Source: Macrostomum lignano
Lineage: Eukaryota
Direction of reading: 5' to 3'
NCBI GenBank assembly: GCA_002269645.1
Contig: NIVC01003816.1
Location: 1 to 64,000 of the forward strand
DNA: 64,000 bases
In this document: in pieces, positions 5,732-36,052 of the stretch
Numbering within the stretch: position 1 is the first letter of the stretch
How the letters are laid out: the number at the start of each line of letters is the position of its first letter
Notes under the pieces: model-generated
What the model was told of the DNA's origin: nothing
Seen by the model: only the letters and a program-made list of their open reading frames with translations
The model's database searches: none
Made by a program: the position numbers and the translations under genes

Positions 5732-6014
5732 TACTTCATGTGCATGTCATCATGGTTGTCAATTTGTTGTTACATTTGTTACATCAAGCAGACCAGTGCA
5801 TGGGTTCTCCATAGCCAATCCACTGTTTGCCAAAGATGTCATTTAGCTATTCATTGTCTTAGGCTTAAGTAGTTTGTAAAAAATGGATAGTAAGTTCTTT
5901 TTATAGGAGTTATGTTCATTATCCAACCTGTTTCAGCCCAATCTGGCCTATTCAGCTATAGCATTTCATGCCTAAGCCAAGGTGCATTGATAGTAAGAAT
6001 TTATTCAATCTAGC

Positions 6015-6845
6015 ATGCAGCCTGGCGACGAAGTAATGATAGTTTACAAAGGCGAGGACGCCCTCGGCATCGTAGAGCGCTGCGATCCCGAGCTGGACTC
6101 TGTGCTTGTCAGCCTCACGCTGTCGTCTGGCGCCCGGATTCAAACTGTGCGCCGCCTGGCCGATTGCCTGCCACGCGCTGTTGCCGAAGCCGCCGCTGCG
6201 GCTGAAGCTGCGGAGAACAGCCAAGCGGACGATGCTGACGAGGACGAATTCGAAATTGACATCGAGGCCAGCCAGCAGCATCCGCAGCATCAGAGTCGCG
6301 CTGTTGGATTCTCGACACCAATTGGGGCAAACCAAGCGCTTGATCCGCCGCGATTGCGTCCGCAGCAGCAGCAGCAGGCTCTGCACATGTACAGCTGCAG
6401 TGCCCCGCCCTCCGCGCCGCCTCCAGTCTGCTGCGCCAGTTTAGCCTTGCCGCTCAGCGTCAACGTCGGCGCCGGGAGTGGCGCATTTTTTGGCGGCTTC
6501 GCCGTCTCGCCGTTTCGCCTGTCGGCTTCGTCCTCGTTTTCGTTTCCTCCTCCGGCCGTTTCGACTGGCGGCGGAGGCAGAGGCGGCGGTGCAGGCGGCG
6601 GCCCGGAAGACCCGCAACAGCTGCTGGCCGTGACCCCGCCGTCGTCATTGTCGTCCTCGTTCTCTGGCGGCGACGCCTCCTCAGCCTCGCTAACGCCGCT
6701 GTCGCCGCGCGGCAAATGCCGCCGAATTTATGGCGTTGATAACCGGAGAATGTGGTGCACGCAGTGCCGCTGGAAGAAGGCCTGTACAAGATTTAAGCCG
6801 GCCCAGACCATGCTGCCCGCTCAGTCCAGCACTGGAATGCAGTGA
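6015..6845 (+). CDS. ZNF395: ZNF395/ZNF704/SLC2A4RG (HDBP)-family protein with C-terminal C-clamp, intronless, 276 aa
   Basis: C-clamp [28 protein letters not shown] matches the family motif KKCRKVYG.E.RD.WCTACRWKKACQRF. The N-terminus [19 protein letters not shown] resembles the ZNF395 N-terminal conserved region. The family call is firm; the paralogue symbol is approximate. Confidence 0.85.
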
Positions 6846-10437: not shown

Positions 10438-13400
10438 TTAAAAGTCAAGCGGTTTGGCTAGCGAGTCCAGCAGATTCCTGTGCGTCAGCTCTATGCCCCG
10501 GCCGCTGCCGCTGGCGCCGCCCGTTGAAGCGGCTGTCTCCAGCAGCTCGGACTCGATGTCCGCCTTGGATTTGCCCTCGAACGTTGCCAAGCGTCGCACT
10601 AGAATTTCCCGATCTCTTAGCAGATTCGCGATTCGCTCGCGCATGTGGCGCATGTCCCGGTTGAACTGGCAGCTCTTGGCCCTGATGGCCTGGTCTACGC
10701 TCTCCAGCTGTGAGCTGATGCTGCACTCCAGGTCTGTCTGCACAGCGATATTGTTCAATAGCATCATTGCGGCTGCGTCCTGCTGCTGTTGCTGATGATG
10801 CTGATGGTCGTGCAGTCGGGTCTCCTCCGAGTGATCGGCTCCCAGCGACATGAGCAGACTGTCCCTGTCGCTGGTGTACTTTTGAAGCCTGCGCGAGCGA
10901 TTTATGTTGATGGAAATTGTGAAATTATGCGATTCACACTGTAGCGATGGTATGGCTTATTCGAAAGCATGGCTCAAGTATTGAAACTTCTTTAAGGCAG
11001 CTAAGTTTAATTTTTTGGGTTCCAATTATACGAGTATCCAACAGCCCCAGAAGCCAATCAAGAAGAAATCTCAACTTAATCAGAGAATGGCATCAAGTCT
11101 CACAGCTTAATCAGAGAAATGCATCAAGTCTCACAGCTTAATCAGAGAATGGCATCAAGTCTCACAGCTTAATCAGAGAAATGCATCAAGTCTCACAGCT
11201 TAATCAGAGAAATGCATCAAGTCTCACAGCTTAATCAGAGAAATGCATCAAGTCTCACAGCTTAATCAGAGAAATGCATCAAGTCTCACAGCTTAATCAG
11301 AGAAATGCATCAAGTCTCACAGCTTAATCAGAGAAATGCATCAAGTCTCACAGCTTAATCAGAGAAATGCATCAAGTCTCACAGCTTAATCAGAGAAATG
11401 CATCAAGTCTCACAGCTTAATCAGAGAAATGCATCAAGTCTCACAGCTTAATCAGAGAAATGCATCAAGTCTCACAGCTTAATCAGAGAAATGCATCAAG
11501 TCTCACAGCTTAATCAGAGAAAGGCATCAAATCTCACAGCTTAATCAGAGAATGGCACTGAAATCTCACAGCTTAGTCAGAGAATGGCACTGAAATCTCA
11601 CAGCTTAGTCAGAGAATGGCACTGAAATCTCACAGCTTAATCAGAGAATGGCACTGAAATCTCACAGCTTAATCAGAGAATGGCACTGAAATCTCACAGC
11701 TTAGTCAGAGAATGGCACTGAAATCTCACAGCTTAGTCAGAGAATGGCACTGAAGTCTCACAGCTTAATCAGAGAATGGCATCGAACCTCAGCTGCATGA
11801 GTGTCACACAGAAGTCCCACAGTTTAGTGATAGAATTGCACCAAAATGTGGGCCACAAATTCGCACCCAAGTCTCGGCACGTGTCTTTAATTGCACTTAT
11901 CATCTCGAATTATCCGGCCAAAGCAGCCGCTTTGGCTTTGACTTGTCCGAAAGAAAATTTCTAGCCGCGGCGCTGAACTGCTCGAAACTTACAGATTTCA
12001 ATTTTCCCCTCGAACTTCCCTTCTCCCCCTGTCCAGTACTTTCCCAGCTTCGCAGTCGCAGCCTCATCAGAGACCATTAGGAAACCGGGCAATCCAATTC
12101 CACGAATCGCTACTGGGAGCTTGCTGAATGTGGGATTTACTTCCTCAGCAGCCTGGCTGAAAAGTCAATTCCACTTTTATTTGTGTTTTTCTGTGACAAA
12201 ATTCTAGCCTGGGTTTTTTGAACCGTTTTTTATTTCACATTAGTGATGTTTCGCTGACAAATTAGTATCTATATACGTAAATGGGAAGAGGGAAGGGAGG
12301 GGAGATGAGAAACGGAGGCATAGGAGATGGGTGAGAAATAGTAGATGAGAAACGGGGGGAGCAATGTGTAGAAGGAGGGAGAGATTTGTAGAAGGGGAGA
12401 GATGTGTAGAAGAAGGAAGAGGAGATGTGCAGAAGAAGGGAGAGATGTGTAGAACAAGGGAGAAGAGATGTGCAGAAGAAGGGAGAGATGTGTAGAACAA
12501 GGGAGAAGAGATGTGCAGAAGAAGGGAGAGATGTGTAGAACAAGGGAGAAGAGATGTGCAGAAGAAGGGAGAGATGTGTAGAACAAGGGAGAAGAGATGT
12601 GTAGAAGAAGGGAGAGATGTGTAGAACAAGGGAGAAGAGATGTGCAGAAGAAGGGAGAGGAGATGTGCAGAACAAGGGAGAGATGTGTAGAAGGGAGAGG
12701 AGATGTGCAGAAGAAGGGAGAGATGTGTAGAACAAGGGAGAAGAGATGTGCAGAAGAAGGGAGAGATGTGTAGAACAAGGGAGAAGAGATGTGCAGAAGA
12801 AGGGAGAGGAGATGTGTAGAAGAAGGGAGAGGAGATGTGTAGAAGAAGGGAGAGGAGATGTGCAGAACAAGGGAGAGATGTGTAGAAGAAGGGAGAGGAG
12901 ATGTGCAGAAGAAGGGAGAGATGTGTAGAACAAGGGAGAAGAGATGTGCAGAAGAAGGGAGAGGAGATGTGTAGAAGAAGGGAGAGGAGATGTGTAGAAG
13001 AAGGGAGAGATGTGCAGAAGAAGGGAGAGGAGATGTGCAGAACAAGGGAGATGAGGTGTGTAGAAGAAGGGAGAGGAGATGTGCAGAACAAGGGAGAGAT
13101 GTGTAGAAGAAGGGAGAGGAGATATGCAGAAGGGAGAAGATGTGTAGAGGGAGGGAGAGGAGATGTGAGATGGGGAGAGAGTTGACGGTAAGAGAAGGGG
13201 TTAAGTATGAGAAGTGGAGAAAGTGATAAATGAGGCATCCAAGAGGTTACAGTGCAGGGCATAACAGAGGCATAAGAGACGAAGTGTAGAGAGGCTGCGG
13301 AGGTATCGATATGCTTTGCAGTGTAGTGTTTGGAAAGCAGCAGCTCCTGAACATAAGAGTAGAAATTCTCTGACTCTGAAGAGGCCCATCAATGGCCAAG

Positions 13401-16400
13401 TTGCACTCGCCTAGCTGGCGCTGCTTGTCAACTTGACAGGCTATAATTCGAAAGAAAACACATTGCTGTCACAACAACTGCAGCCACTCACCTGAGCGCC
13501 ACGGGCAGCGCGTCGCGATTGCACCGCCGCCTCTCCTGCGCCTCCCGGTAGCGGACCAGGTGGCGGTAGACCCTCTGCAAGGCGTTTGTGGGAAGAGTTG
13601 CTAGGGCCCTGGCCATTCGGGGAAAACTAGCTCGAGAACTAAACTCATATACACTTGTGCCAAGAAGGGAGTAGAAATCACCCTGGCAGAGTTCCCTAAT
13701 GGAATCATTTAATTGAATTCTCTACTGTAACCCCCATTTTGAATTTCCCTAGTGAAATCCCCTAGTGGAACCCCCTAGTGGAATCCCCCTTGTAGAATCT
13801 CCTAGTGGAATCCCCCTTGTAGAATCCCCTAGTGGAACCCCCTTGTAGAACCCCCTTGTGGAACCCCCCTTGTAGAATCCCCTAGTGGAACCCCCTTGTA
13901 GAACCCCCTAGTGGAACCCCCTTGTAGAACCCCCTAGTGGAACCCCCTTGTAGAACCCCCTAGTGGAAACCCCTTGTAGAATCCCCTAGTGGAACCCCCT
14001 TGTAGAACCCCCTTGTGGAACCCCCCTTGTAGAATCCCCTAGTGGAACCCCCTTGTAGAATCCCCTAGTGGAACCCCCTAGTGGAGCCCCCTTGTAGAAT
14101 CCCCTAGTGGAACCCCCTTGTAGAATCCCCTAGTGGAACCCCCTAGTGGAGCCCCTTGTAGAACCCCCTAGTGGAACCCCCTTGTAGAATCCCCTAGTGG
14201 AACCCCCTAGTGGAGCCCCCTTGTAGAATCCCCTAGTGGAACCCCCTTGTAGAACCCCCTAGTGGAACCTCCCTTGTAGAATCCCCTAGTGGAACCCCCT
14301 AGTGGAGCCCCCTTGTAGAATCCCCTAGTGGAACCGTTTAGTGGAACCCGCTAGTGTAACCCGCTAGTGAAACCCCCTTGTAGAATCCCGGCCCTAGTGG
14401 AACCGTTTAGTGGAACCCGCTAGTGTAACCCCCTATAGTGGAACCCCCTAGTGGAATCCCCCTTGTAGAACCCTCTACTGGAATTCCACGGAATCCCCCT
14501 AGCGGAATTCCCCAAGGGAATCTCCAGAAAGCCGTAGGCAAGATAGACATTTTCATTCCGCGTCTTTGTCATGAAGCTATCTAAATCGTGTTTTCACCGT
14601 TTCACCGTGTTTCAAGAGTCAAATCAAGGGTGTCTGCTTATTTAGAAAAATCCTCTCTACATAAAAAATGCTGAGGTTCGAGGATCCACATGGCAGATAG
14701 AAGGAAGTACGTGGTGGAAAAATGTTAACTGAAAAAAATCCGTTGGCTAATAGATCATTTATAGGAAATCGGAATTGAGCTATTAGCTATGAAAATGCAT
14801 CAGGGATCCGGGGAAATGTTGAGTTTTATAAGCATTGGCTGAAGTTTTTTGACCGTTTTTCATCGTTTTTTTGCTTTTCCAAATTCAAATTTTAATTATT
14901 AGCTATTCGAGCCTTGATTTTTTCACATATTCTATCTCTTATTTTTGTATTCATTTTTATTGTAATATTCTGTTACACTACTACATTACCTGTAGCAAAA
15001 TGCCAGAAAGTTAAACATAGGGCTGCTACAACACAATTAGATTGCATGCTGTCACAGATATCTTCAATCACCCCTTCGGATCGTGCAATTATTTTCCAGG
15101 ACTGGTCCGCCAGCTTGCTGCTTCACCGGACCATCGCTACTCAATTTACCTCTCCCTCTCCCTCTCCCGCTCCCTCTCCCTAGCTCCCTCTCCCTCTCCC
15201 GCTCCCTCTCCCGCTCCCTCTCCCTAGCTCCCTCTCCCTAGCTCCCTCTCCCTCTCCCGCTCCCTCTCCCAAGCTCCCTCTCCCAAGCTCCCTCTCCCGC
15301 TCCCTCTCCCAAGCTCCCTCTCCCAAGCTCCCTCTCCCAAGCTCCCTCTCCCAAGCTCCCTCTCCCGCTCCCTCTCCCTAGCTCCCTCTCCCTCTCCCGC
15401 TCCCTCTCCCAAGCTCCCTCTCCCAAGCTCCCTCTCCCGCTCCCTCTCCCTAGCTCCCTCTCCCTCTCCCGCTCCCTCTCCATAGCTCCCTCTCCCTCTC
15501 CCGCTCTCTCTCCCAAGCTCCCTCTCCCGCTCCCTCTCCCTCTCCCTCTCCCTCTCCCTCTCCCAAGCTCCCTCTCCCGCTCCCTCTCCCTAGCTCCCTC
15601 TCCCTCTCCCGCTCCCTCTCCCAAGCTCCCTTTCTCGCTCCCTCTCCCTTTACCTCTCCCTCTCCAGCTCCCTCTCCCTAGCTCCCTTTCTCGCTCCCTC
15701 TCCCTTTCCCTCTCCCTAGCTACCTCTCCATCTCCCTCTCCCTCTCCCTAGCTCCCTTTCTCGCTCCCTCTCCCTTTCCCTCTCCTTAGCTACCTCTCCA
15801 TCTCCCTCTCTTTTTTCCTCTCCCTAGTCCCCACCCTCCCTCTTCCACTCTCTCTCCGTAGCCCTATCTATCGCTCGATTGGTTTATCTCTGACGCATCT
15901 AAGAAAATCCATCAAGCAAAAGAAAATGGATAAAGAAAGTAAATTTTGACTCCAGATTTGGCAACATCTCTCAACCCCCCCCCCAGGGAAAGCGCATGCA
16001 AAGTGCTAAATCAGGATGACCCAGAGCTGACCCTCCACGAACCTGGCTGATTGGCAGGCAGCAGGCGGGGTTCACCCTGACCTTGCGCAGCAGGGGGAAC
16101 AGGGCAAAGTACAGCAGGAACTCCGCGGCTGCTGTGGCACCAGACAGCAGAACTCCGAAGCAGAAGAGCAGCAGCGGGCCCGCGAAGTTGGTGGGCGTGA
16201 GGCGGACTTTATTCTGCGGGTGGTTGAGGGGGTGGGTTCCAGCACATCCCCTCACCGACTCCAGCACATTCCCTCACCGACTCCAGCACATCCCCTCTGT
16301 GACTCCAGCACATTCCCTCACCGACTACAGCACATCACCTCACCGACTCCAGCACATTCCCTCACCGACTCCAGCACATCCCCTCTGTGACTCCAGCACA

Positions 16401-19400
16401 CTCCCTCTGTGACTCCAGTACATCCCCTCACCGACTCCAGCACATCCCCTCTGTGACTCCAGCACATTCTCACTGTGACTCCAGCACATTCCCTCACCGA
16501 CTCCAGCACATTCCCTCTGTGACTCCAGTACATCCCCTCACCGACTCCAGCACATTCTCACTGTGACTCCAGCATATTCTCTCTGTGACTCCAGTACATC
16601 CCCTCACCGACTCCAGCACATTCTCACTGTGACTCCAGCACATTCTCACTGTGACTCCAGCACATTCCCTCACCTTCTCCAGCACATTCTCACTGTGACT
16701 CCAGCACATTCTCACTGTGACTCCAGCACATTCTCACTGTGACTCCAGCACATTCTCACTGTGACTCCAGCACATTCCCACTGTGACTCCAGCACATTCT
16801 CACTGTGACTCCAGCACATTCCCACTGTGACTCCAGCACATTCTCACTGTGACTCCAGCACATTCTCACTGTGACTCCAGCACATTCCCACTGTGACTCC
16901 AGCACATTCTCACTGTGACTCCAGCACATTCTCACTGTGACTCCAGCACATTCCCACTGTGACTCCAGCACATTCTCACTGCAAGCCGAAGCACAGTTAC
17001 TCGGAAATATTCAAGGTCGAGTTTCAAGCAGCCGGTTGAGCACACAGAGAAGCACCCAGCGGTCCGCCCGGCAGCTGACCAGCTCCAACTCCTCATAACC
17101 TGTCGCTCTCGGTAAACAAAGCAAGGCCCAGCAAACACAGCGACTGCAGCTCAAGTCTCTCCCATGATGCCCGCCAGCCTCGGGCCCGCGACTGCTGGGC
17201 GGCCAACTTCAGGAATTTCGTCGGCTCCTCTCCCCCCCTGCCGCCAGCTGTCGAGGCTGCTGAAGAACTTTCAGTTTAACAGCACGCCAGGAAGAAGAGA
17301 GGCCAGCGGACTCGGGAAATATGTGTTTGCCCATCATCCGCCTCTCCTCTGGAACATCCCCCCTGCTTGCTCGCTCATTCTCTCTCTGTGTTCGTGTGTG
17401 CCTAAGCTAGTAGCTAGCAGAGCCGGGTTCCTGAGCAGAAAACTGACGAACAATATGACTGTTGAGGAATCGATCTATCGAATGCCAAATTTTTAGCATT
17501 GACGCTTTAATTGGAAGAACGGGTGATCTTGTTTCTTAGAAATTCTCTGAAGGCAGGCTTAGCTCAAAAAAATCATTACGGAGACAGGAATGGCTCATTT
17601 CTTCCGTTTCCTCGTAATAAGGGACTCCATTTTTTTGGTTTTACAGGGTGTACAGCAGCCCTGACTTTCTAATGGTCAAGCATGTACACTCTCTGTGCCT
17701 TGGGGGTTGGCCCTCATGGCTGCGAATCGCACAACAACCCCACCCTCCTGGCAACCACCTGCCGCATCTCACATGTCTAGTAGTTGCAAAGGTCGTGACT
17801 GACACATAGCATAGCAACGCTCTGCTCTCACCACGTGAGGTCGCTTGTCCTTTCCCGGCACCACTTTGGTCCACAGATCGATCTTCTGCTTCATCTGGTC
17901 GGTGAAATCGTTGGTGCCGAGCAGGTTGGTGAGGGTGGCGGTCAGGTCCTGGCCTGCCTCTCGCAGCTCCCTGCTGAGTGCGGCGGTGTAGCCAACCCTG
18001 CCGAACGGTTTGCCAACCAATTCCACATTGTAGGTGTGGTTGACTCGCAGCAGGTACTGCAGCAGCTCAGTGTCGTATAGGAATGCCCCAATGCTGCCTT
18101 TTCTGTGGGGTGAAAAATTGTCACATCTTGTAGTTATTTTTACTATACTGATTGGCCCGACTTGCCTCTCGATAGAGAAAATCGATTACTACACGTGGCA
18201 TATTGAATAGGTTTTTGAAAAAGTCATTGAAAGTCACAAGGTGTCCACTGCGCCGCCCCAAAACACAACCGTTAGAAGCCATTGGAAGTCACAAGGTGTC
18301 CACTGCGCCGCCCCAAAACACAACCGTTAGAAGCCATTGAAAGTCACAAGGTGTCCACTGCGCCGCCCCAAAACACAACCGTCAAAAGCCATTGGAAGTC
18401 ACAAGGTGTCCACTGCGCCGCCCCAAAACACAACCGTTAGAAGCCATTGGAAGTCACAAGGTGTCCACTGCGCCGCCCCAAAACACAACCGTTAGAAGCC
18501 ATTGGAAGTCACAAGGTGTCCACTGCGCCGCCCCAAAACACAACCGTTAGAAGCCATTGGAAGTCACAAGGTGTCCACTGCGCCGCCCCAAAACACAACC
18601 GTTAGAAGCCATTGGAAGTCACAAGGTGTCCACTGCGCCGCCCCAAAACACAACCGTTAGAAGCCATTGGAAGTCACAAGGTGTCCACTGCGCCGCCCCA
18701 AAACACAACCGTTAGAAGCCATTGAAAGTCACAAGGTGTCCACTGCGCCGCCCCAAAACACAACCGTCAAAAGCCATTGGAAGTCACAAGGTGTCCACTG
18801 CGCCGCCCCAAAACACAACCGTTAGAAGCCATTGGAAGTCACAAGGTGTCCACTGCGCCGCCCCAAAACACAACCGTTAGAAGCCATTGGAAGTCACAAG
18901 GTGTCCACTGCGCCGCCCCAAAACACAACCGTTAGAAGCCATTGGAAGTCACAAGGTGTCCACTGCGCCGCCCCAAAACACAACCGTTAGAAGCCATTGG
19001 AAGTCACAAGGTGTCCACTGCGCCGCCCCAAAACACAACCGTCAAAAGCCATTGGAAGTCACAAGGTGTCCACTGCGCCGCCCCAAAACACAACCGTTAG
19101 AAGCCATTGAAAGTCACAAGGTGTCCACTGCGCCGCCCCAAAACACAACCGTTAGAAGCCATTGGAAGTCACAAGGTGTCCACTGCGCCGCCCCAAAACA
19201 CAACCGTCAAAAGCCATTGGAAGTCACAAGGTGTCCACTGCGCCGCCCCAAAACACAACCGTTAGAAGCCATTGGAAGTCACAAGGTGTCCACTGCGCCA
19301 CCCCAAAACACAACCGTCAAAAGCCACTGGAAGTCACAAGGTGTCCACTGCGCCACCCCAAAACACAACCGTTAGAAGCCATTGGAAGTCACAAGGTGTC

Positions 19401-22400
19401 CACTGCGCCGCCCCAAAACACAACCGTCAAAAGCCATTGGAAGTCACAAGGTGTCCACTGCGCCACCCCAAAACACAACCGTCAAAAGCCATTGGAAGTC
19501 ACAAGGTGTCCACTGCGCCACCCCAAAACACAACCGTCAAAAGCCATTGAAAGTCACAAGGTGTCCACTGCGCCGCCCCAAAACACAACCGTTAGAAGCC
19601 ATTGGAGGTGTCCAATGCGCAACCCAAAAGACAGGCACTGGATGCCCACTCTCACCCTAGGGCCGCCATGGCCTCCTCAGCGGTGTCAAAGAAGCTGAGG
19701 TGCTTCACCAGGTGATGGTAGGTTCTGTTCAGCTCAATCGCTGTGCCGCTGCCCCTCACGGTGCCCAAACTGATCTGGCCGCTCTGAATCTGCAAACATT
19801 CGGGCAACTGGAGGTCAGAGGCAGTGCAGTGAGTGACGCTGCAGTACTATAGTAAGTTAGAGTACAGTATGTAGTTAAACTGCAGTAACATGGATAGCCA
19901 CTCAACAGTAGATGAAAAGGAAAAGCTTGATTTTTATCTGGAACTATCGCTTTTCTCACTTCGAGCAGCAATTGTTATCAAAATAACGCTTTTATACAAA
20001 CCAGACCAGTAGAATATGATCATTTGCCCACACACTATGCCCATTCACCCACGGACTATACCCATTCACCCACGGACTATACCCACTAACCCCACAGACT
20101 ATGTCCATTCACGCCACATACTATGCCCATTCACCCATAGACTATGCCCATTCACCCATAGACTATGCCCATTCGCCCATAGACTATGCCCATTCGCCCA
20201 TAGACTATGCCCATTCGCCCATAGACTATGCCCATTCGCCCATAGACTACTTGTATGCCCATTCACCCCACACACTATACCCAGTCATCACCCACAGACT
20301 ATGCCCATTCACCCATAAACTATGCCCATTCACCCATAGACTATACCCATTCACCCATAGACTATACCCATTCACCCATAAACTATACCCATTCACCCAT
20401 AGACTATACCCATTCACCCATAGACTATACCCATTCACCCATAGACTATACCCATTCATCCATAGACTATACCCATTCACCCATAAACTATACCCATTCA
20501 CCCATAGACTATACCTATTCATCCACAGACTACGCCCATTCACCGGGACTATACCCATTAACCCCACCACAGACTATGCCCATTCACCCACAGACTATGC
20601 CCATTCACGCCACACACTATACTCATTCACCCACAGACTATGCCCATTCACCCTACAAACTATGCCCATTTACCCACAGATTGCATTTAGCAACAGCAAT
20701 TTATTCTGCTGATAAATTTCTGGCAAAATCCTCGTGTGAGAGCAGGTGGCGGGGGCAAAATGAAGGAATGAAAATTCACGCATTCACTTTCCTGATTTCA
20801 GATTAAAGCGAGGTTCCAAAAATGGGTATTAATTATTAAAATTGTTTAAAAAGGCAATGCGGCGCAGAACAATGCAAGAAAATTTTCTGCTCAGCAAATT
20901 GTGTTGCCAAATGAAAAAATCAATAATTTGCCAATTTTATTATCCGAAATTTTGAAATACTAACTTAAAATGCGTTTTTTGTTGAGCTTTGCCTCCATGA
21001 AGGCTGTCATATGGGACTGTGTGAGGATCTGCATCCATTTATAGCTGCTAGATTAGCGAAACACGTCTGGGTTTGCCCGGCTGTCTCCCCTCTCTGTCTC
21101 CCCCTCTCTGTCTCCCCCTCTCTGTCTCCCCCTCTCTGTCTCCCCCTCTCTGTCTCCCCCTCTCTGTCTCCCCCTCTCTCTTCTCCCCCTCTCTGTCTCC
21201 CCTCTCTGTCTCCCCCTCTCTGTCTCCCCCTCTCTGTCTCCCCCTCTCTGTCTCCCCCTCTCTCTTCTCCCCCTCTCTGTCTCCCCCTCTCTGTCTCCCC
21301 CTCTCTGTCTCCCCCTCTCTGTCTCCCCCTCTCTGTCTCCCCCTCTCTGTCTCCCCTCTCTGTCTCCCCCTCTCTGTCTCCCCCTCTCTGTCTTCCCCTC
21401 TCTGTCTCCCCTCTCTGTCTCCCCCTCTCTGTCTCCCCCTCTCTGTCTCCCCCTCTCTGTCTCCCCCTCTCTGTCTCCCCCTCTCTGTGTCCCCTCTCTG
21501 TCTCCCCTCTCTGTCTCCCCCTCTCTGTGTCCCCTCTCTGTCTCCCCTCTCTGTCTCCCCCTCTCTGTCTCCCCCTCTCTGTCTCCCCCTCTCTGTCTCC
21601 CCTCTCTGTCTCCCCCTCTCTGTCTCCCCCTCTCTGTCTCCCCCTCTCTGTCTCCCCCTCTCTGTCTCCCCTTCTGTCTGTCTCTGTGTGTCTCTCCCTC
21701 TTTCCCTCTCCCTCTGTCTCACCCATCTGCATCTAACCTCCCTAAGACAGGGCTGCCAAACCGGGACAGAAAATTTCTCCTAAATATGATGCTACGAGTC
21801 ATATGCAAGCAGAACACAAACACTGGTAAATGTTAGGAATGCAAAATTTTCAAAGTAAATTCTCTTCACTTCGCGACAGGATACTCTCTTGAGGCTGAGA
21901 ATCGGAAAGAGGAGGAACAGAAGCCCGAGCTGTGAGGCTTGGAAGGCTGCAAATCTAATTAATTCGCAGACAGCGCCACTGATTTGATTGCAGGGCACAG
22001 CTGGCTGCTGAACTGGGGTTTTGAGAAAGTTTTGTTCAGCCAAAAATCGGCGCAATTAATTTGAATTGTGCTGCAGAATGAGTTGAAGGAATTGGTGAAA
22101 TTTAAAGCATTTCATTAGTACACTTTTTACTGTAAAATTTTACTGCTGTGCCTTTCGCATACGCAGTCTCGTGAGCATGAAAATGCTATTTGATAAACAA
22201 ATATGAAGAAAAAGAACAAATCGGAAAATAATTGACATTTTCGATGACTGCTAGAGTGACAGATTCGTCGAGTGACAGTTTTGTAGATTGACAGATTCGT
22301 AAGAGTGACAGATTTTTAGATTGACAGATTCGTAGAGTGACAGATTCGTAGAGTGACATTTGTAGAGTGACATATTCGTAGAGTGACAGACTCGTAGAGT

Positions 22401-25400
22401 GACAGATTCGTAGAGTGACAGACTCGTAGAGTGACAGATTCGTAGAGTGACAGACTCATAGAGTGACAGACTTGTAGAGTGACAGGCGACTCACCCGGCT
22501 GTCGTGGATGCCGACGATGTCAGACGCTTCGCCTTCGCCGACCATGAAGGCGGCGAGGTTGGCGGTGTAGCTGGCAATGAAGACGAGGCAGAACATGGCG
22601 TAGATATTCAGCAGGAAGCGGGCGCTCCAGCACTTTGGCGACTTAGTCTGCACCGTGTGCGAGAACAGCACAGACCAGGTGAGGGTCAGAGCGCTTGGGA
22701 AGCTGAACACCCGGCGCCGATTGCGGCCGTAGGGCGTCAGGCCGAACGGGCTGAGCCACTCGTAGATGACGGCGGCAACGGCGGCCACGTGGACGGTGGC
22801 CAGGATGCACATCCACATGAACAGGTCGAAGGGATAGAGGAAGCCAAATCTGGTCGCCCGGCCGCTGAGCTTCTCGGTTCGGTTAACCACGATTGACACC
22901 GAGGTCAGCAGGTAAGGGTCTGAGGTGAGAAAGTCGCGGCGCCAGTTTGCGTTGCTGACCACCTGAAACGTCGCGCGACTTTAATGTTATTTGAGGTGTA
23001 ATTTAACATCACGTGACTTGAATTGTCTTCAGGTGTGTACTTAAACCTCATGCGGTTTGATTTGTTTTTGAGTGTTATCTTGGAGCATGTACTTAAAAGT
23101 CACGTGACTTGATTTGTCTTGGAATATGTACTTTAACATCACGTGGCTTGATTTGTCTTGGAGTATGTACTTTAACATCACGTGGCTTGATTTGTCTTGG
23201 AGTGTGTACCTTGACATCACGTGACTTGATTTGTCTTGGAATATGTACTTTAACAACACGTGATTTGATTTGTCTTGGAGTATGTACTTTAACATCACGT
23301 GGCTTGATTTGTCTTGGAGCATGTACTTTAACATCAGGCGACTTGGGGCCTTTTCATATTGCTTGTTCTGGTTCCAGAACCAGAACCAATTTGTGAAGTA
23401 TAAATTTTTGTCTCCATAACTAGAGGGAGATACGTGCTATAACGTTTTTATTATTGAATGACAATCGCCAAGAAGAAAGTGAAAATTCGTGCAAAGTGAG
23501 GCTGTTAAGGCAGTCAAACATTTAACAGAATTTAATAGTTATACTGCTGTTTTTCTTGGAAGATCCGAACCGATTCTGATTCTGGAATTAGTAATATGAA
23601 AAGCCCGTTGATTTATCTTGGAGTGTGTACTTTAACATCACGTGACTTGATTTATCTTGTAGTATGTACTTTAACATAACTGAATTGATTTACTCGGATC
23701 TTGTAGTGTGTACTTTAACCTCACTTGACTTGTCTGTGAGATTTAGTTCTTTTTAGCATCGTGGGACTAAATACTTATAGTAGGTGTACTTCAAGATCGC
23801 GCGACGCAATACGCCAGGTATCACGTGAGAGAAAGGAATTTTATAACAGCAGTTTTAATACACAATTTAAAACTGTGCTATTAATCCTTGGACGGAGAGA
23901 TAGTAAATGCTTTCAGCAAAAAGCGATTGTCTATAAAATTTCAGGCAGGAAACTTACGGAAGCCCCGAGGCCTTACTGGGATAAGTTGAGGGATGATAAT
24001 TTCAAGAATTTGCTGCCTCATCCTCATCTTGCATGGCGTCCTCCGAGCTGAGGCGAAAGGCAATTTAGCTTGAGTCGGAAACTGCAGCTGTACCTGGGTG
24101 TTTAGAAGGACTCCTATCGCCTCATCTGCCGTTATGACTGTGGGATAGGCAAGATTCTTCGCCTTGGAAAAAACACCCCAGACCGGACAACTCTTTTTCT
24201 GGTCTGTAAGGTCACCCCGGGCCGGAAAGGCAAGAAGAGCTGCCGCGCGGTCTTTTAGCTAAATATTTCGAGCGTGCTGATCCTGTCGAGTTCGAGTGTC
24301 TTAGTATTGATTCATGTTTATATAGCGAACTTTAGCTTCAAGCTGCCGGATGGTTGGCAGAGTTGTTCTTGACTGATTGATATCCTTATAGCAGCAGATA
24401 TATTATTTTAGTAGCCTATTGGGTGAGACAGGTTAAACTTCTAGCTTATGCAGAGCCTTTCCTGTCCCATTAGCTCTGATCGAAGAGTAGCTAACAGAGT
24501 GACACTGACCACTGTCATGTCATAGAAGATAGTGCTGGCCAGGCCCAAGTGAGGAGTAAATACGATTCTGTAGTCTATGGCCTGGCCCATGTGAGTAATA
24601 AATACGATTCTGTAGTCTATGGCCTGGCCCAAACGATGAATAAATACGATTCTGTAGTCTATGGCCTGGCCCAAGTGAGGAGTAAATACGATTCTGTAGT
24701 CTATGGCCTGGCCCAAACGATGAATAAATACGATTCTGTAGTCTATTGCCTGGCCCAAGTGAGGAGTAAATACGATTCTGTAGTCTATTGCCCGGCCCAA
24801 GTGAGTAATAATGACGATTCTGTAGTCTATGGCCTGGCCCAAGTAAGGAGTAAATACGATTCTGTAGTCTATGGCCTGGCCCAAACGATGAATAAATACG
24901 ATTCTGTAGTCTATGGCCTGGCCCAAGTAAGGAGTAAATACGATTCTGTAGTCTATGGCCTGGCCCAAACGATGAATAAATACGATTCTGTAGTCTATGG
25001 CCTGGCCCAAGTGAGGAGTAAATACGATTGTGTAGTCTATGGCCTGGCCCAAATGAGGAATAAATACGATTATGTAGTCTATGCCCTGGCCCAAGTGAGT
25101 AATAAATACGATTCTGTAGTCTATGGCTGGCCCAAGTGAGTAATAAATATACGGTTCTGTAGTCTATGGCCTGGCCCAAGTGAGTAATAAATACGATTCT
25201 GTAGTCTATGGCCAGGCCCAAGTGAGTAATAAATACGATTCTGTAGTCTATGGCCAGGCCCAAGTGAGGAATAAATACGATTGTGTAGTCTATGGCCTGG
25301 CCCAAGTGAGTAATAAATACGATTCAAGATACGAGTCAAGATACGATTCAAGTAAGCCCAATCAAGTATGCGGAGCTGTATATATATACTGTAGACTAGG

Positions 25401-28400
25401 AGGAAACCTTCCTGTCCAGATGCTTGCTAGAGAGGGGGTCCATGGTTTAGGCTAACAACTTGTTTGTCTATGGCTCGAGCTGACTGGAAAACTTGGCCAG
25501 AGGATTAAATGAGACAAAAGCAACGCTGACCAGATTGAGCTCAGATGTGCAGCCCAGCTTACCCATTTGTCACACCTCGCTATACTGCTGCAGTTTGCTG
25601 CACAATATAGCTGAGAATGATTGCTTTAACAGAATTATTAATTATAATTATTCCATGCAATTGGCTGCTTCAGAGCTTTCACATTTTCCGTTGCTTTACG
25701 TATAGTAGAGCTATTTAATATTCGAGCTCTCTCTCTCTCTCTCTCTATTCGAGTCGGCCCAACCTTGAATCCTGGACGGGGGTGGAAAGGAAATGGAAAG
25801 CCACTCCAGAGCGCGTCTTCAGTGAGCGCTCAGGCAATAGAGCTTCTTGGGTGTTGCATAGGGGTGAGCAGATCAAGCTGCTTGAGTCCTGCAGTCAGTT
25901 CGGTCAGAAATTGGCGATGACTGAGATGGAACTGGGAGAGCCATACATAGGAAGCCAATTGAGTAGCTACCCTGACCAATGGATACTCCAACTCAGTTGG
26001 CAGGCAGAAGTTAACATTCCCGTATGAATAATGAAATCAGGGCGCTGATTAAACAATATCCTGGCAGAATTCATGACTAATGGAATATTTTTGATACAGA
26101 CTGTGGGTAGCTGTGAAGCTTAAACAAATTACTGATCACCTGTAGAATCCTCATGCAGTAAGACAAATTCTTGGCTTCCACGTAAATCTTAAAGCTGGCT
26201 TAAAGCCTGGAGTCCTGATAAAAAACTAGGACTCAAGGACAAGCCTAAAACTCACGGAAACACTTGGTACCCAGGCCAAACTTTGTTACCTAGGGACAAA
26301 CCTAGAGGTCAAGGACAAACTCAGTAGGTACCCTATGAAAAACCTAGGACCTATTGAAAATGCCTAGAACCCCAGCACAGACTCAGTGCCCCAGCACAAA
26401 CTCAGAGCCACAGCACAAACTCAGTGCCCCAGCACAAACTCAGTGCCTCAGCACAAACTCAGTGCCCCAGCACAAACTCAGTGCCTCAGCACAAACTCAG
26501 TGCCACAGCACAAACTCAGTGCCACAGCACAAACTCAGAGCCACAGCACAAACTCAGTGCCCCAACACAAACTCAGTGCCACAGCACAAACTCAGTGCCA
26601 CAGCACAAACTCAGTACCCCAGCACAAACTCAGAGCCACAGCACAAACTCAGTGCCACAGCACAAACCTTTGACCCGAGAGCAATGTTGGCCCTCTCGCT
26701 TTTGAGCTCCTGCGCCAGGCAGTTGTCCGCGGAGACGCAGCAGCCACCTTTTGGAAAGACGCGCACGTCGGCAACCTGAATGACGGTGGGCAGGTGGTCG
26801 CAGAGCTCCTTCTGCTGTTGGAGTGCCTTCTGACTGAACATCTTCTCGCACTGCAGCTGCACAGGGAACTGGATGCTGAGGTAGATGAAGTCGATGGCGA
26901 TGCCGAAACAGCAGCGCTGCCGCGGCTCCTCGGTGCCGTTCGGACGCAGCAGAGTGCAGGCCATGCCGTGCTTGCACTCCCAGCGCGACTCGCTCGGCTC
27001 GCCGCTAAACTCCTTGATCCGGACCAGCGGGTCCTCCTCGTTGAGGGTGAACACCAGCTCGATGTTCTTCTGCCTGACCTGAACCGCGCCTTGGTGAGTG
27101 CTGGACCAAGTGGCCTCAAATTCCAGAGTAGCGATCCAGCGCAGGCCAGCCATGGGTTGGTCGTACTTCTGCGGCAGTGCCACCCCATGCAGCAGTTTGC
27201 GCAGGTTGTAGAACCCGGTGGGCAGCACCGGCTGCTGCTGCGAGGATCTTGCACTCGCATTGCAGGCAAACTTTGGGCAGCTAAATGCTCTGTGAAGGGT
27301 TATAGTAATAGTATTTTATCGATATGGAAATATGGATTCATCCTAGCAATGTCAGTGCCAGTTGAAATTGATTTTATTCAAGCATAATTTATTCCACAAA
27401 AAGTGATGATGTTCTATAAATTGGACATTGGTCAACGGTCCCAGAAGAAATTGCGACTGCATTACTGACCTCCTGGCCAGCCACCATCCATCAAACAGGA
27501 TAAATTTGATTAGTGTGCGAGAGTCGCCTTCGCAAGTATCTGCAATGCAAAACCAAAGGACTACTACCCGGTATGTCAGGACGCTACACTTAAATATCGT
27601 GTAATTATTTCGAAGGCCGATTTCCACGAAAACATACACTGCGGAGATAGGAAATAATCATTTTTTCGTCACAAAAACAATGATTGCATTTGATCTGGGA
27701 TGCTGAAGATTATCACTCTTTTAATTTAGCATGGACAGCATGTTACTCTGATGTTAGTGAAAGTTTTATTTTCATATCGCTTTTTACTTTATTTTCCTAT
27801 TATTCTTCTTAATATTGTTTGTATACTGCAAATTTGAATGGGATTGAAATGGAATTACACCCACAATAATGGCTTAAGAGCATTAATGCCTGCATGCAAC
27901 ATTTTTATTACAAATATAATTCTTTGTAAAAATGGAGTGTTGCGTCCTGATATACTGGAGTGGTCCTTGAGCGAAACCTTACATAAAGCATTCTTTGCGT
28001 TGCAAATCTCATGGTCCTACCGCTTCCCATTTGAAAGATTTTCCAATCGAAACCTGTTGATTGAACAAATATGATCTTTTATCAGCTTATACTTGTGCAC
28101 TAATGCGATCCTGTGACATGTATCTAGTACAGGCTCTCTGAGGCGAAACGCGTGTGTATGGCTCAGTAAAAATATTCAGCCCCGTCCATTTTTGACTCAT
28201 TTCTACTCTGAACCCGAACAGATGCAGGCGAGTCTTTCAACACTCTGTCTCTCTCCTTCCCCAGCTTGTAGCCAGGCGACCAGAACGTGAAGGGGCCGAA
28301 CGTGCACAAGAGAGAATTGCTTGACAGTTAGTGATGAAGTGAGACAAGGGGACTAGGATTATGAATCATAATTTATACTGCTAGACTCGTGATACTGCCA

Positions 28401-30619
28401 CAGACGTGCAAACTCAACCAGCACCAGCCTCACCTGATGGTGCTCTCATAGTGCTTGCTCAGCAACCGTCGGCAAGTCGCCAAATCCTCCGAGCACCTCG
28501 CCGGCAGCAGCTGACCTGTCGCCGCCTCCTCCTTCAGCTCCTTCAGCTCCTTCAGCTCCAGCTGCCTCGCCCTGGCATAGGCGATGTGCAGCTGCTGGGA
28601 GCTGGCCATGAACTTCAGCAGCAGCACGGACACCAGGGTGCTGAGCTTACTAATGTGCTTCTTCTGCTCATCGTAGTACTGCTCCTGCTTCTGCTCGTCA
28701 ACGTGCGGCCCGAACACGTGTGCCACAGTGCTGGGGCTGCTGCTGAAGTACCTCAGCTGCATCTGGCCGGCGGTCGTCTCGAACATCGCCTCCATCGCGG
28801 ATGACTCCACGAACACGTGCAACCGTTCGTCGGCTGGAATTTTCAGCTGACGTCGAAATGCGTCCAGCGCAGTAGTGGCCAGGTGTGCGGCTCCGATGTG
28901 GAACAGCACGAACTGCTGCAGCTCCGAGCCGTCCTCCTCATCCTCAGCATCACCTTCTACCCGATCTTCATCCGCCACAGCCTCGGATGAGAACAGCTTA
29001 GCCCGCGTTCGCATGTCAACAACTGGATCTCCAGTGAATGCGCGAACCTGGTGGCTGAACAGGTGTCGCTGCAGGTGTCTGCTAATTAATTGGAAACAGT
29101 CGGAGGCCACTATTGCTACGTACTTGTAGACTCGCCTTCTGCTGAGCAGGTAGGCGAGTAGAACGCGGGCATCGTTGCAGGTGTTGTCCTCCACGGGGAC
29201 GTATTGGAAGTGCTTTTGCTGCAATTTCAACATTTCATTCAGTGTTATGTTACATAGGATCGTTTGATGACAGAGTTTGCCAAGTGTCCCAGCGTCCCAG
29301 TGTCCCAGTGTCCCAGTGTTTCAGTGTCTCAGTGTCCCAATGTCCCAGTGTCTCAGTGTCCCAGTGTCCCAGTGTCCCAGTGTTTCAGTGTCTCAGTGTC
29401 CCAATGTCCCAGTGTCTCAGTGTCCCAGTGTCCCAGTGTCTCAGTGTCTCAGTGTCCCAGTGTCCCAGTGTCCCAGTGTCCCAGTGTCCCAGTGTTCCAA
29501 TGTCTCAGTGTTTCAGTGTCCCAGTGTCCCAGTGTCCCAGTGTTCCAGTGTCCCAGTGTTCCAATGTCTCAGTGTCCCAGTGTCCCAGTGTCCCAGTGTT
29601 CCAATGTCTCAGTGTTTCAGTGTCCCAGTGTCCCAGTGTCCCAGTGTTCCAATGTCCCAGTATCCCAGTGTCCCATGCAGTGTCCCAGTGTCTCAGTGTC
29701 CCAATTTCCCAGTGTCCCAGTGTCCCAGTGTCCCAGTGTTCCAGTGTCTCAGTGTTTCAGTGTCCCAGTGTCCCAGTGTTCCAGTGTCCCAGTATCCCAG
29801 TGTCCCAGTATCCCAGTGTCCCATGCAGTGTCCCAGTGTCTCAGTGTCCCAATGTCCCAGTGTCCCAGTGTTCCAGTGTCTCAGTGTTTCAGTGTCCCAG
29901 TGTCCCAGTGTCCCAGTGTCCCAGTGTCCCAGTGTCCCTGTGTCTCAGTGTCTCAGTGTCTCAATGTCCCAGTGTCCCAGTGTCCCAGTGTTCCAGTGTC
30001 CCAGTGTCCCAGTGTCCCAGTGTCTCAGTGTCTCAGTGTCCCAATGTCCAAATGTCCCAGTGTCCCAGTGTCCCAGTGTCCCAGTGTCCCAGTGTCCCAG
30101 TGTCCCAGTGTCTCAGTGTCTCAATGTCTCAATGTTCCAGAATCTAGCTCTAAGATTCCTCACTTCTCTATGAAAATTCAGGAATATATTATGTATAGTG
30201 TGAGCAAAAGTGAAGATTTGTCAATGTCTCACCAGCTCGGCCGAGTTCGGCAAGTCCACCAGCCGGTTGCCAACGCAGACAACGCGAAGTAGATTGCAGG
30301 CGAGCACCAGCTGAGCGGACATGGTTGGCGACAGCACCGCCACCACGGACTGCGAATCGATGACGCTGACAAGATTAGTGAGCTCGCTGTCCGGCACCAT
30401 GACAGAGTCGGGCTGGAACTCCGCCCCGACCGCGTGCTGCAGATCGCGAACTCGCTTGGTGAGAAACCTGGCGTAGAACTCGGTCCTCTCTGGGGACAGC
30501 TGGCGCAGCTGCGACATGTCCAGCACCATCAGCGTCTTCAGCGACTTCAGCGGCGTCGGCGACTGCTGCTGCGCCTCGAAGGCTTGCAGAAAAAGCACCA
30601 GCTGCACCAGCAGCCGCAT
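10438..30619 (-). CDS. GRIN3: Divergent NMDA-type ionotropic glutamate receptor subunit, GluN3-like, ~1170 aa
   Basis: Phase-consistent exons: 30619-30233 (signal peptide MRLLVQLVLFLQAFEA, ATD), 29218-28434, 28319-28207 (tentative), optional 28053-28021, 27539-27470, 27289-26668 (S1: EEDPLV, C..G.AC, RCCFGIAIDF), 22962-22495 (PFDLFMW M1, FSFPSAL M2, SPKCWSARFL, SYTANLAAFMVGE M3), 19789-19656 (GTVRGS), 18102-17832 (AFLYDT, VGKPF, WTKVVP), 16213-16082 (M4), 13574-13492, 10888-10438. The total is divisible by 3. Confidence 0.88.
11075..11780. repeat. 31-bp minisatellite (aatcagagaaatgcatcaagtctcacagctt) in the last receptor intron
   Basis: Direct reading. There are two sub-variants (tgcatcaag, then tggcactgaaa). 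Confidence 0.96.
12300..13180. repeat. Purine-rich ~21-24-bp minisatellite (gagatgtg[ct]agaa[gc]aaggga)
   Basis: Direct reading. It is the source of the spurious ORFs at 12240-13262. Confidence 0.95.
13745..14500. repeat. Minisatellite of alternating cccctagtggaa / ccccttgtagaa units
   Basis: Direct reading. Confidence 0.95.
15148..15850. repeat. Polypyrimidine minisatellite (ctccctctccc[g/aag/tag])
   Basis: Direct reading. It is G-rich on the receptor sense strand. Confidence 0.95.
16240..16980. repeat. 22-23-bp minisatellite (gactccagcacattc[c/t]c[t]cac[c/tgt])
   Basis: Direct reading. It starts ~30 bp from the acceptor of the M4 exon. Confidence 0.95.
17642..17745 (-). mobile_element. 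SINE core fragment (same family as 56975-57528 and 63585-63948)
   Basis: gtacagcagccctgactttctaatggtcaagcatgtacactctctgtgccttggggg.ttggccctcatg aligns with both other copies. Confidence 0.75.
18225..19605. repeat. 55-bp minisatellite, ~25 copies, filling ~90% of a receptor intron
   Basis: Unit gaagccattggaagtcacaaggtgtccactgcgccgccccaaaacacaaccgtta. Confidence 0.97.
20030..20670. repeat. 21-bp minisatellite (ctat[g/a]cccattcacccataga)
   Basis: Direct reading. Confidence 0.95.
21085..21720. repeat. 14-bp minisatellite (tctctgtctccccc)
   Basis: Direct reading. Confidence 0.96.
22250..22494. repeat. 16-bp minisatellite (gagtgacaga[t/c]tcgta) abutting a 5' splice site
   Basis: Direct reading. 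It decays with distance from the donor at 22494. Confidence 0.9.
22990..23730. repeat. 39-bp minisatellite (aacatcacgtg[a/g]cttgatttgtcttggagtatgtacttt) in two blocks
   Basis: Blocks at ~22990-23345 and ~23600-23730. Confidence 0.9.
24540..25320. repeat. 42-bp minisatellite (tacgattctgtagtctatggcctggcccaagtgaggagtaaa)
   Basis: Direct reading. Confidence 0.96.
26370..26667. repeat. 19-bp minisatellite (cagcacaaactcagtgc[c/a]c) starting exactly at the intron GT
   Basis: The sense strand reads AAG|GTTTGTGCTGTGGCACTGA-GTTTGTGCTG... Confidence 0.93.
29280..30140. repeat. 8-bp microsatellite-like array (cccagtgt / ctcagtgt)
   Basis: Direct reading. Confidence 0.96.
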
Positions 30620-31233: not shown

Positions 31234-31603
<370 letters not shown>

Positions 31604-35375: not shown

Positions 35376-36052
35376 TCCCAAAAGCAGAAAGTACTCGGTC
35401 TTTAGCCAAGGTGATGAAAGCAATGAAATTAATTATATTTTGTATAGCTATTGAGGATAAAAGGAAATTTTGCGAAACTTCTACAGCAACAAAATAAAAT
35501 TGACTTCACTGGAGATTTCAAGCAATAAAATAACCAAGTGGAGAGATATGCCTACTACATTGAGCTCTCTATCGAACGGGATAAAATAGTAGAAATTGCA
35601 AAAATTTCAATAGTAACTAAAAATACGGTTTCTATGCTCAACTAAATGTAATTTTTAATGGATTTCTAACACAAATAATGCTATGATATTGTACCAGGAA
35701 AGCGGCTATAACTACGGGACTTGTGCTTTACTATGAATAGTAACCTGGTATTCTAATAGCTAGTCTGCTTGAATCAAATTTTCCTTACACTTCGCGCGTT
35801 AAAGATGAGAATCTTCCTTCCCTGGACTACTCTGATTGGTTGAGAGGAACAGGGAGGCTGTTTTATCGATCGATTGCGCGGACTATGAGCATGCAGTTAA
35901 GGGTAACGAGAGTCGAGGCTTGATAGCTCAGAGTTGTTTCAAATTTAAGCTTTTGGGAGCCGAAACATTGCGTTTTACAGCATGATAAACCTCATGTTAT
36001 TTATATAAAGACGGTTCAGCTGCCGGCAACAGAAGACTGAAATAATAAATTC

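Follow-up and report, generated by a model that had tools for sequence, protein, structure and literature searches.

A remodelled, arginine-less ligand clamshell in a predicted NMDA3-class receptor subunit maintained in two copies in Macrostomum lignano

Can a receptor subunit of the NMDA (N-methyl-D-aspartate) type work with a clamshell that is unable to bind glycine or glutamate, or has such a clamshell acquired a new ligand? This question is raised by a GluN3-like gene on contig NIVC01003816.1 of Macrostomum lignano (assembly GCA_002269645.1), positions 1 to 64,000 of which were analyzed in this study (hereafter the window). The gene is located at 30619..10438 on the minus strand and consists of nine exons, which encode 1123 amino acids (aa) and end with a TAA stop codon. 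An earlier note on this DNA, which covered positions 22495-27289, had proposed a functional channel subunit that does not bind glycine or glutamate canonically. At the level of the sequence this proposal is supported by an intact gene model, by a public protein model containing the same splice junction, and by a constrained paralog. The gene has remained intact under purifying selection; its predicted product appears to belong to the NMDA3 class of subunits, with a clamshell that has been remodelled and lacks the arginine, a variant maintained in two M. lignano copies. In the predicted protein the first membrane segment (M1), the GluN3-type pore loop, the gate, M4, the clamshell-channel linkers, and a C-terminal motif are retained, while lobe 1 of the clamshell (S1) is remodelled. 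Since the loss of the agonist arginine is fixed in two old paralogs under purifying selection, with channel, linkers and tail being conserved, the locus can be regarded as a natural experiment on the question asked above.

The change that carries this reading lies at the end of S1. In alignments generated with MAFFT (15 and 46 sequences) as well as with HMMER against GluN3A, Asn604 occupies the position of the agonist arginine, and five residues before it Val599 occupies that of the Ser/Thr. The earlier note had given the arginine position as N or W depending on gap placement, which the alignments narrow down to Asn, and had correctly read the Ser/Thr position as V. The agonist arginine is present in 43 of the 45 aligned relatives and in 97% of 204 animal ionotropic glutamate receptors (iGluRs) (bioRxiv 10.1101/2023.08.03.551817). 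As the Ser/Thr column varies among invertebrate GluN3-like proteins anyway (M, P, F, V, S, and T occur), it is the loss of the arginine that represents the decisive change. The arginine clamps the alpha-carboxylate of the agonist, which the Ser/Thr helps to hold (by its amino group, according to the earlier note). No characterized iGluR is known to bind its agonist without this arginine, and GluN1/GluN3 currents are reportedly abolished when the glycine site of GluN3 is disabled.

Across the four columns of the GluN3A glycine site (R638, S633, S801, and D845), the M. lignano protein reads Asn604, Val599, Gly769, and Asp809, and the Asp alone is kept. The loop GSGT in lobe 2 (S2) is indeed found at 19753..19742, but its degeneracy, which had been claimed before, is mild: Gly769 keeps the backbone NH through which the Ser of GluN1 and GluN3 also contacts the agonist, and Thr770 corresponds to the Thr used at this position by GluN2 and AMPA subunits. 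The acidic S2 residue D809, at the position that binds the amino group of an agonist, was rightly described as intact (AFLYDT, 18086..18069) and lies, like GSGT, outside of 22495-27289. In exon 3, the aromatic GKYG...W.GLVGDL segment is replaced by VRVFPKGGCCVSADNCLAQEL, again in agreement with the earlier note, all quoted strings of which are present in the sequence where it had placed them. A Pfam search returned no match of S1 to PF10613 or PF00497, even at E<=1; the relatives from Tubulanus (P0001), an acoel (P0031), and a horseshoe crab (P0037) match both. Taken together, the clamshell is, judged from these residues, most likely unable to bind glycine or glutamate in the usual way.

A second gene of M. 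lignano shows the same loss. A public protein fragment of 240 aa (PAA54276.1; P0066), which is 64% identical to the C-terminal tail, led to a paralog on contig NIVC01002941.1 (L005) that was modelled by tblastn and manual splicing. This paralog has the same exon order and an open frame over about 820 aa, with identities of 48% in the S1 exon, 74% in residues 599-640, 83% in M1-M3 (80% over exon 4), 64% in S2, and 54% in the tail, where the C-terminal motif is kept. At its S1 end, ...RSNMAIGSKVISSK|DWRDEFLVTDPY, the arginine column is occupied by Asp, next to which W-R is conserved (D-W-R-D-E-F), and its S2 contains GTVAGSGTEVEL, in which GSGT is kept, and GAFLYET, with Glu as the acidic residue. 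S597, V599, W605, R606, GSGT, Y808, and D/E809 are kept in both copies. Overall dS between them is about 0.9. Since both copies lack the arginine and are open, the arginine loss predates the duplication and both have stayed intact since; that an older sister copy shows the same loss argues for a maintained variant and not for a broken gene.

The ratio of nonsynonymous to synonymous substitution rates (dN/dS) between the two copies was calculated by the Nei-Gojobori method with a codon bootstrap, giving the following values and 95% confidence intervals (CI):

S1 exon: dN/dS 0.58-0.62 (95% CI 0.37-0.94), with 1% of replicates >=1
Residues 599-640 (helix D, next strand, and pre-M1 linker): dN/dS 0.14 (95% CI 0.03-0.36)
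M1-M3: dN/dS 0.20 (95% CI 0.10-0.35)
S2: dN/dS 0.27 (95% CI 0.16-0.41)

S1 is relaxed yet still constrained, and the two most constrained parts of the protein are the non-canonical helix-D segment and M1-M3. The dN/dS estimate that had been suggested earlier, run here between the paralogs, is thus below 1 in every domain.

Independently of its coding content, the paralog shows some peculiarities at its introns. The intron at the S1 end appears to be shifted by 15 nt on both sides (GSKVISSK|DWRDEF vs. GSK|VVSNANWRRDF), so that the total length is preserved, and a direct repeat, TCCAAGGT, lies on either side of the 15 nt at the paralog donor. The penultimate intron has a GC donor, as is also annotated in PAA54276.1. 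The sites concerned are:

NIVC01002941.1, 560-650, 2150-2190, and 10203-10290: intron-shift and donor sites of the paralog

The reading of the S1 end depends on the junction between exons 3 and 4. Translation of 27289..26668 joined to 22962..22495, i.e., the splice 26668>22962, reproduced the previously reported S1 end ...ERANIALGSK|VVSNANWRRDFLTSDPY, and the UniProt entry A0A1I8IVW0 shows the same ...ALGSK|VVSNANWRR... junction. Several ways of obtaining a different S1 end were considered and rejected. Searches for a missing micro-exon or an alternative S1-end exon by tblastn, in which the window was queried with eight relatives and the 3.7-kb intron with four S1-end peptides, yielded only noise (E >0.2, mostly minisatellite). 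Reading through the donor of exon 3 leads to a stop after 18 codons, and other GT/AG combinations for the S1 end break either the frame or the length. In a relative from run DRR639838 (P0028, contig L004), the region from the first S1 strand to M3 forms one uninterrupted, arginine-less frame of 314 codons, in which the A...Y spacing amounts to 25 residues, the same as in the M. lignano protein. Since this relative encodes an arginine-less S1 end of equal length in a continuous frame through M3, no micro-exon is missing. The earlier note had allowed for a missing micro-exon that would restore the spacing of Ser/Thr and Arg; the intron devoid of an alternative exon and the relative with the uninterrupted frame speak against it. 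Based on the public model, the intron devoid of S1 coding potential, the DRR639838 genes, and the paralog, the junction is not an artefact.

With respect to receptor class, the protein matches Pfam PF00060 over residues 647-909 (E 2.5e-25), and phmmer against the PDB gave 184 bits for GluN3A (E 3e-53) and 120 bits for the best GluN2, GluN2D (E 1e-33). Among named proteins, the closest are 'NMDA 3A-like' predictions from a nemertean (Tubulanus), amphioxus (Branchiostoma), hemichordates (Saccoglossus, Ptychodera), a starfish, and vertebrates. In a neighbor-joining tree, the protein and vertebrate GluN3 share a clade that has a bootstrap of 89% and contains neither GluN2-type sequences nor kainate receptors or IR25a, a placement that is provisional given a distance method and 171 columns reaching from the S1 end to M3. 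PDB scores, named relatives and tree all give GluN3 as the best-matching class, in line with the identity assigned by the earlier note, and we conclude that the predicted protein is a GluN3-class iGluR subunit.

The channel module points in the same direction. M1-M3 in exon 4 share 50-62% identity with GluN3-like proteins of other phyla, the pore loop LFSHTV.TKSPKCWS.RFL is common to the M. lignano protein and invertebrate GluN3-like proteins, and the M3 gate SYTANLAAF, which had been described as intact, is found as an exact match at residues 729-737. The motif NIAVQTD...MRERIANLLRDREILVRRLATFE, which can be read as a coiled coil, is matched by the C-terminal domains of the Tubulanus (P0001) and Branchiostoma (P0002) proteins (tblastn, 10752..10489, E 2e-11 and 1e-9, respectively). 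As far as the sequence alone can tell, the cysteine pattern of NMDA-type S1 lobes, a Cys pair ahead of helix A, is present as well, with WECKHGMAC...RCCFG aligning with CCYG/CCHG of relatives and being kept in the paralog. An AlphaFold2 (AF2) model of residues 391-946, based on a 15-sequence alignment and with a mean predicted local distance difference test (pLDDT) score of 66, matched NMDA receptor chains in Foldseek (E about 1e-22); at the position of S1 it contains beta-alpha elements, with pLDDT 65-79 for part of them.

The gene model itself shows no irregularities. Its 3369 coding nucleotides contain neither stops nor frameshifts across the nine exons, every exon is in frame, all introns are GT-AG, and the phases are compatible. 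The G+C content at third codon positions (GC3) is 0.80 for the gene and 0.74-0.96 by exon, compared with an overall intron GC of 0.40-0.53; as these GC3 values hold throughout, the odd S1 exon and both N-terminal exons share the coding signature of the other exons. The earlier statement that the open reading frame is full-length applies to the whole gene 30619..10438 (1123 aa) but not to 22495-27289, since this interval holds only two of the nine exons. The features of the gene are as follows, all on the minus strand:

30233..30619: exon 1, with the start codon (30619..30617), a probable signal peptide MRLLVQLVLFLQAFEA, and the first part of the N-terminal domain; GC3 0.85; also contained in UniProt A0A1I8IVW0
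28434..29218: exon 2, remainder of the N-terminal region, at the position of the amino-terminal domain (ATD); its phase 2 into exon 3 is consistent
26668..27289: exon 3, S1 lobe with the WECKHG...RCCFG cysteine motif, an insert, VRVFPKGGCCVSADNCLAQEL, and the end ERANIALGSK
26868..26788: S1 insert of 27 aa in exon 3, after the CCFG helix
26668: GT donor of exon 3, preceded by the final residues VRVFPKGGCCVSADNCLAQELKSERANIALGSK
22963..26667: intron 3, 3.7 kb, with three minisatellites
22495..22962: exon 4, with the S1 end VVSNANWRRDFLTSDPY, the pre-M1 linker, M1, the pore loop LFSHTVQTKSPKCW, and M3
22962 and 22495: borders of exon 4, with a ...tttcag acceptor before VVSNANWRRDFLTSDPY and the end GIHDSR|gtgagt
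22930..22947: codons N604-W605-R606-R607-D608-F609, with Asn604 in the agonist-arginine column (GluN1 R523 / GluN3A R638)
22572..22546: SYTANLAAF gate in M3, residues 729-737, exact match
19656..19789: exon 5, start of S2 with GTVRGSGTAIEL; GSGT at 19753..19742
17832..18102: exon 6, S2 with GAFLYDT (AFLYDT at 18086..18069; D809 in the GluN1 D732 column) and GKPFGRVGY
16043..16213: exon 7, M4 and post-M4 segment VRVNPACCLPISQ; its donor at 16043 was set by comparison with P0066 and Tubulanus
13492..13574: exon 8, RVYRHLVRYREAQERRRCNRDALPVAL, conserved with P0066
10438..10888: exon 9, encoding the C-terminal domain, in which the NIAVQTD...MRERIANLLRDREILVRRLATFE motif lies at 10752..10576, and the TAA stop (10440..10438)

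The N-terminal region of 390 aa yielded no match to ANF_receptor (PF01094) in Pfam, and a single-sequence AF2 prediction of the N-terminal 454 aa reached a pLDDT of only 36. A search using the N-terminal 639 aa returned as sole protein the own-species model A0A1I8IVW0 and hence no orthologs of the N-terminal domain plus S1. Of the 1180 matches of an exhaustive HMMER search, nearly all aligned only from residue ~580 on, and neither S1 before this residue nor the whole N-terminal domain can be aligned with GluN3A.

Loss of the agonist arginine is not restricted to M. lignano. We surveyed 159 sequences, comprising the earlier matches and those of the exhaustive search after reduction to representatives at 50% identity, and found true loss in two DRR639838 genes, in the acoel Symsagittifera roscoffensis, in the horseshoe crabs Tachypleus and Limulus, and in the nematomorph Gordionus; in Diaphorina 'IR12' the arginine segment is deleted. 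Of the relatives for which S1 sequence exists, the two DRR639838 genes (P0027 and P0028) are closest and have Lys and Ala in the arginine column, and a further relative (P0039) is represented by a 929-bp contig without usable S1. Since the Gordionus protein (P0043, 'NMDA 2B-like') groups with GluN2-type sequences, its loss lies outside of the GluN3-like clade, and since the horseshoe-crab gene sits in another subclade, the arginine was lost independently and more than once among GluN3-like genes. The recurrence in horseshoe crabs, the acoel, and the related nematomorph NMDA-type gene suggests an unusually high tolerance of the GluN3 class to losing canonical agonist binding, a point of relevance to the gating of GluN3. 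In the literature searched we found no paper on arginine-less GluN3-like proteins or on flatworm GluN3, and no characterized NMDA-class subunit without the agonist arginine.

One sequence encountered in this context is of a different nature. P0019, from an ENA contig, is a 2907-aa translated tandem repeat with about 23 copies of a unit that contains an iGluR M1 fragment (ITAIFIAMFEWLSPYGLHPLGRNRY), and it represents an iGluR exon fragment amplified as a satellite in a eukaryote.

What, then, might such a subunit do? That it is a functional subunit with a non-canonical clamshell, the core shared by the readings considered, is highly probable. The most plausible of these, although it has to be regarded as tentative, is that of an agonist-insensitive modulatory partner, which tunes a channel gated through other subunits. 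The M. lignano protein would co-assemble with a putative GluN1-type partner, with or without a GluN2-type subunit, to form a heteromeric NMDA-type channel, to which it would contribute pore and gate properties. Its own clamshell would be unresponsive to glycine or glutamate, and we propose that gating would for this reason depend on the agonists of the partners, the subunit itself being modulatory. By analogy, the engineered GluN1 D732L/F mutants and a natural Trichoplax leak channel support such a role, as they show that an iGluR clamshell can act without agonist.

Several points weigh against this. The retention of W605, R606, GSGT, Tyr808, and the acidic residue 809, together with the very low dN/dS of helix D, fits an occupied pocket at least equally well; these residues and this constraint are the main arguments for an active cleft, but they come from two paralogs and are statistically not decisive. 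Known NMDA receptors open only with all four clamshells closed, and we know of no natural NMDA-class subunit that works without an agonist. Moreover, the AF2 model is of moderate confidence overall and falls to a pLDDT <50 at residues 600-604, and no public protein was found for the 3′ half of the gene, with the paralog fragment P0066 as the sole match.

A possible, though less than probable, alternative is that the clamshell has been re-tuned and closes on a ligand other than an alpha-amino acid, for example an amine or a cation without alpha-carboxylate, in which case the paralogs might be diverging receptors. Besides the residues kept in both copies (S597, V599, W605, R606, GSGT, Y808, and D/E809) and the dN/dS of 0.14 at residues 599-640, this would account for the fast evolution of the S1 remainder (dN/dS about 0.6) and for a length difference of 13 aa near the former aromatic lid, as seen in diversifying ligand-binding domains. 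The copies differ at the former arginine site (Asn vs. Asp), and either residue would, together with the acidic one kept in S2, be suited to a cationic group; insect ionotropic receptors (IRs) without the arginine likewise detect amines and other odorants. However, about eight pocket positions compared between two paralogs are indistinguishable from background identity (64% in S2, 74% in residues 599-640), the gene is of the NMDA class and lies outside of the IR clade, and to our knowledge NMDA-class subunits do not serve as chemoreceptors. A wider version of this idea, which we consider doubtful, is that the M. lignano pair forms, with the DRR639838 pair and possibly the gene of the acoel, an unrecognized GluN3-derived radiation with a clamshell re-purposed for non-alpha-amino-acid ligands; if true, an 'IR-like' sensor family would have arisen independently from the NMDA branch.

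It is unlikely that the alpha-carboxylate of glycine or of another amino acid is instead held by a shifted arginine, i.e., by Arg606 (or Arg607), which on helix D is located two or three positions farther downstream. R606 is present in both copies (NWRRDF and DWRDEF), the segment TNRSF of DRR639838_b, one of the DRR639838 relatives, contains an Arg two positions ahead of the conserved Phe, and an alignment anchored on D/E-F would put R606/R607 one helical turn from the canonical site. On the other hand, R607 is replaced by Asp in the paralog, the other DRR639838 relative (DRR639838_a) and the acoel protein P0031 have no Arg there, neither the Ser/Thr nor the aromatic lid is retained, the AF2 confidence is <50 precisely at residues 600-604, and we know of no iGluR with a displaced arginine. 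The suggestion that the adjacent RR could compensate for the loss is therefore weakly supported: it holds insofar as R606 is kept in the paralog, but not for R607, and neither residue is conserved in the DRR639838 relatives.

Finally, the gene might be decaying or mis-modelled, with S1 as a pseudogene remnant or a wrong exon choice in a repeat-rich genome. In favor of this, S1 and the N-terminal domain have no detectable homologs outside of M. lignano except for weak partial matches, dN/dS of S1 is relaxed to about 0.6, the gene is annotated publicly in a truncated form and joined to a transporter gene, and a minisatellite borders on the donor of exon 3. Such decay or mis-modelling is very improbable in view of the open frame over 3369 coding nucleotides with high GC3 in all exons including those of S1 and the N-terminal region, an equally open and arginine-less paralog, an S1 dN/dS significantly <1 (1% of bootstraps >=1), an L004 relative in which no intron interrupts an S1 end of this type, and an intron 3 without any alternative exon.

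The agonist-insensitive partner thus remains the reading that we tentatively prefer, and the question whether it or a new ligand applies is accessible to experiment, since RNA interference and transgenesis exist for M. lignano.

The public annotation of the locus needs correction. UniProt A0A1I8IVW0 is identical to the new model except for one residue and has the same junctions over exons 1-4, but it ends after exon 4 and is fused in its upstream part to a neighboring SLC13-type transporter gene (Pfam PF00939/PF03600 plus PF00060). This transporter gene (Na+/sulfate or dicarboxylate symporter), the last exons of which are the ones joined to those of the iGluR, is located on the minus strand at ~36000-42255 of the window. 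The join is probably a fused gene model; possibly, it reflects read-through or operon-like transcription.

The surroundings of the gene are rich in repeats. At the score threshold used, long minisatellites (periods of 6-66 nt, 7-108 copies) are found in seven of the eight introns, and none in intron 2 (27290-28433). A 19-nt array at 26373..26667 starts exactly at the GT of the exon 3 donor, so that each repeat unit carries a cryptic GTTTGT donor. A perfect (CTA)x123 microsatellite lies at window positions 31234-31603, about 600 nt upstream of the start codon and between the GluN3-like and the transporter gene. Elsewhere, an open frame of 282 codons with normal amino-acid complexity is present on the plus strand at 5997-6842. 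Examples of the intron minisatellites are:

26373-26667, 24536-25325, 18221-19606, 29283-30140, and 16238-16981: minisatellites in introns of the GluN3-like gene

Compared with known systems, the best-scoring solved relatives of the M. lignano protein are vertebrate GluN3A/GluN3B (PDB 8usw and 9oeo), with an alignment extending from the S1 end past M4. In common with GluN3A are SYTANLAAF, the KxPKCW segment of the pore loop, the 'CC' motif of S1, the acidic S2 residue, a Ser at the S631 column, and the domain order. In contrast to GluN3A, R638 is replaced by Asn604, S633 by Val599, and the second Ser of the S2 SS pair by Gly769; the GKYG lid and the W.GLVGDL helix motif are replaced, too, and S1 contains the 27-aa insert. 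The tip of the pore loop is S-H in M. lignano and G-R in vertebrates. The invertebrate 'NMDA 3A-like' proteins (the Tubulanus XP_074641443 group including P0001, Branchiostoma P0002, Saccoglossus XP_002734105, and Ptychodera XP_070564328), for which no functional characterization was found in the literature searched, belong to the same clade of the tree and share the pore loop and the C-terminal motif NIAVQTD...MRE.LA..LR.KE.L.R.L..LE. All of them keep the agonist arginine and a PF10613 match, whereas the M. lignano protein has neither.

The GluN3-class proteins that have lost the same arginine are those of Symsagittifera (XP_063722254), of Tachypleus and Limulus (XP_076353138 and XP_022249429), and the DRR639838 pair. 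In the tree, the closest neighbors of the M. lignano gene are the latter pair and the acoel protein, a grouping that is weakly supported (40-57%). Unlike the M. lignano protein, those of the horseshoe crabs and the acoel have remained recognizable by PF10613, and the acoel protein has apparently, by visual alignment, lost the acidic S2 residue as well, whereas M. lignano keeps D809.

A comparable pattern is known from the IRs of insects and other protostomes, which have the iGluR fold, have lost one or more of the Arg, Thr, and Asp, keep the channel, and form heteromers with a conserved partner. Like these, the M. lignano protein lacks the canonical agonist Arg and Ser/Thr. Most IRs are chemosensory and have no N-terminal domain; the M. 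lignano protein differs from IRs by its 390-aa N-terminal region and GluN3-type C-terminal tail, and its gene lies inside the NMDA3 clade, whereas IR25a falls outside of the NMDA clade. Lastly, Trichoplax AKDF19383 and the engineered GluN1 D732L/F show that substitutions in the cleft can give activity without agonist (bioRxiv 10.1101/2023.08.03.551817). Both serve as a precedent for an agonist-independent subunit such as the one proposed here, with the difference that they carry a hydrophobic residue at the D732 column, whereas M. lignano keeps the Asp (Glu in the paralog) and is changed on the arginine side of the cleft.

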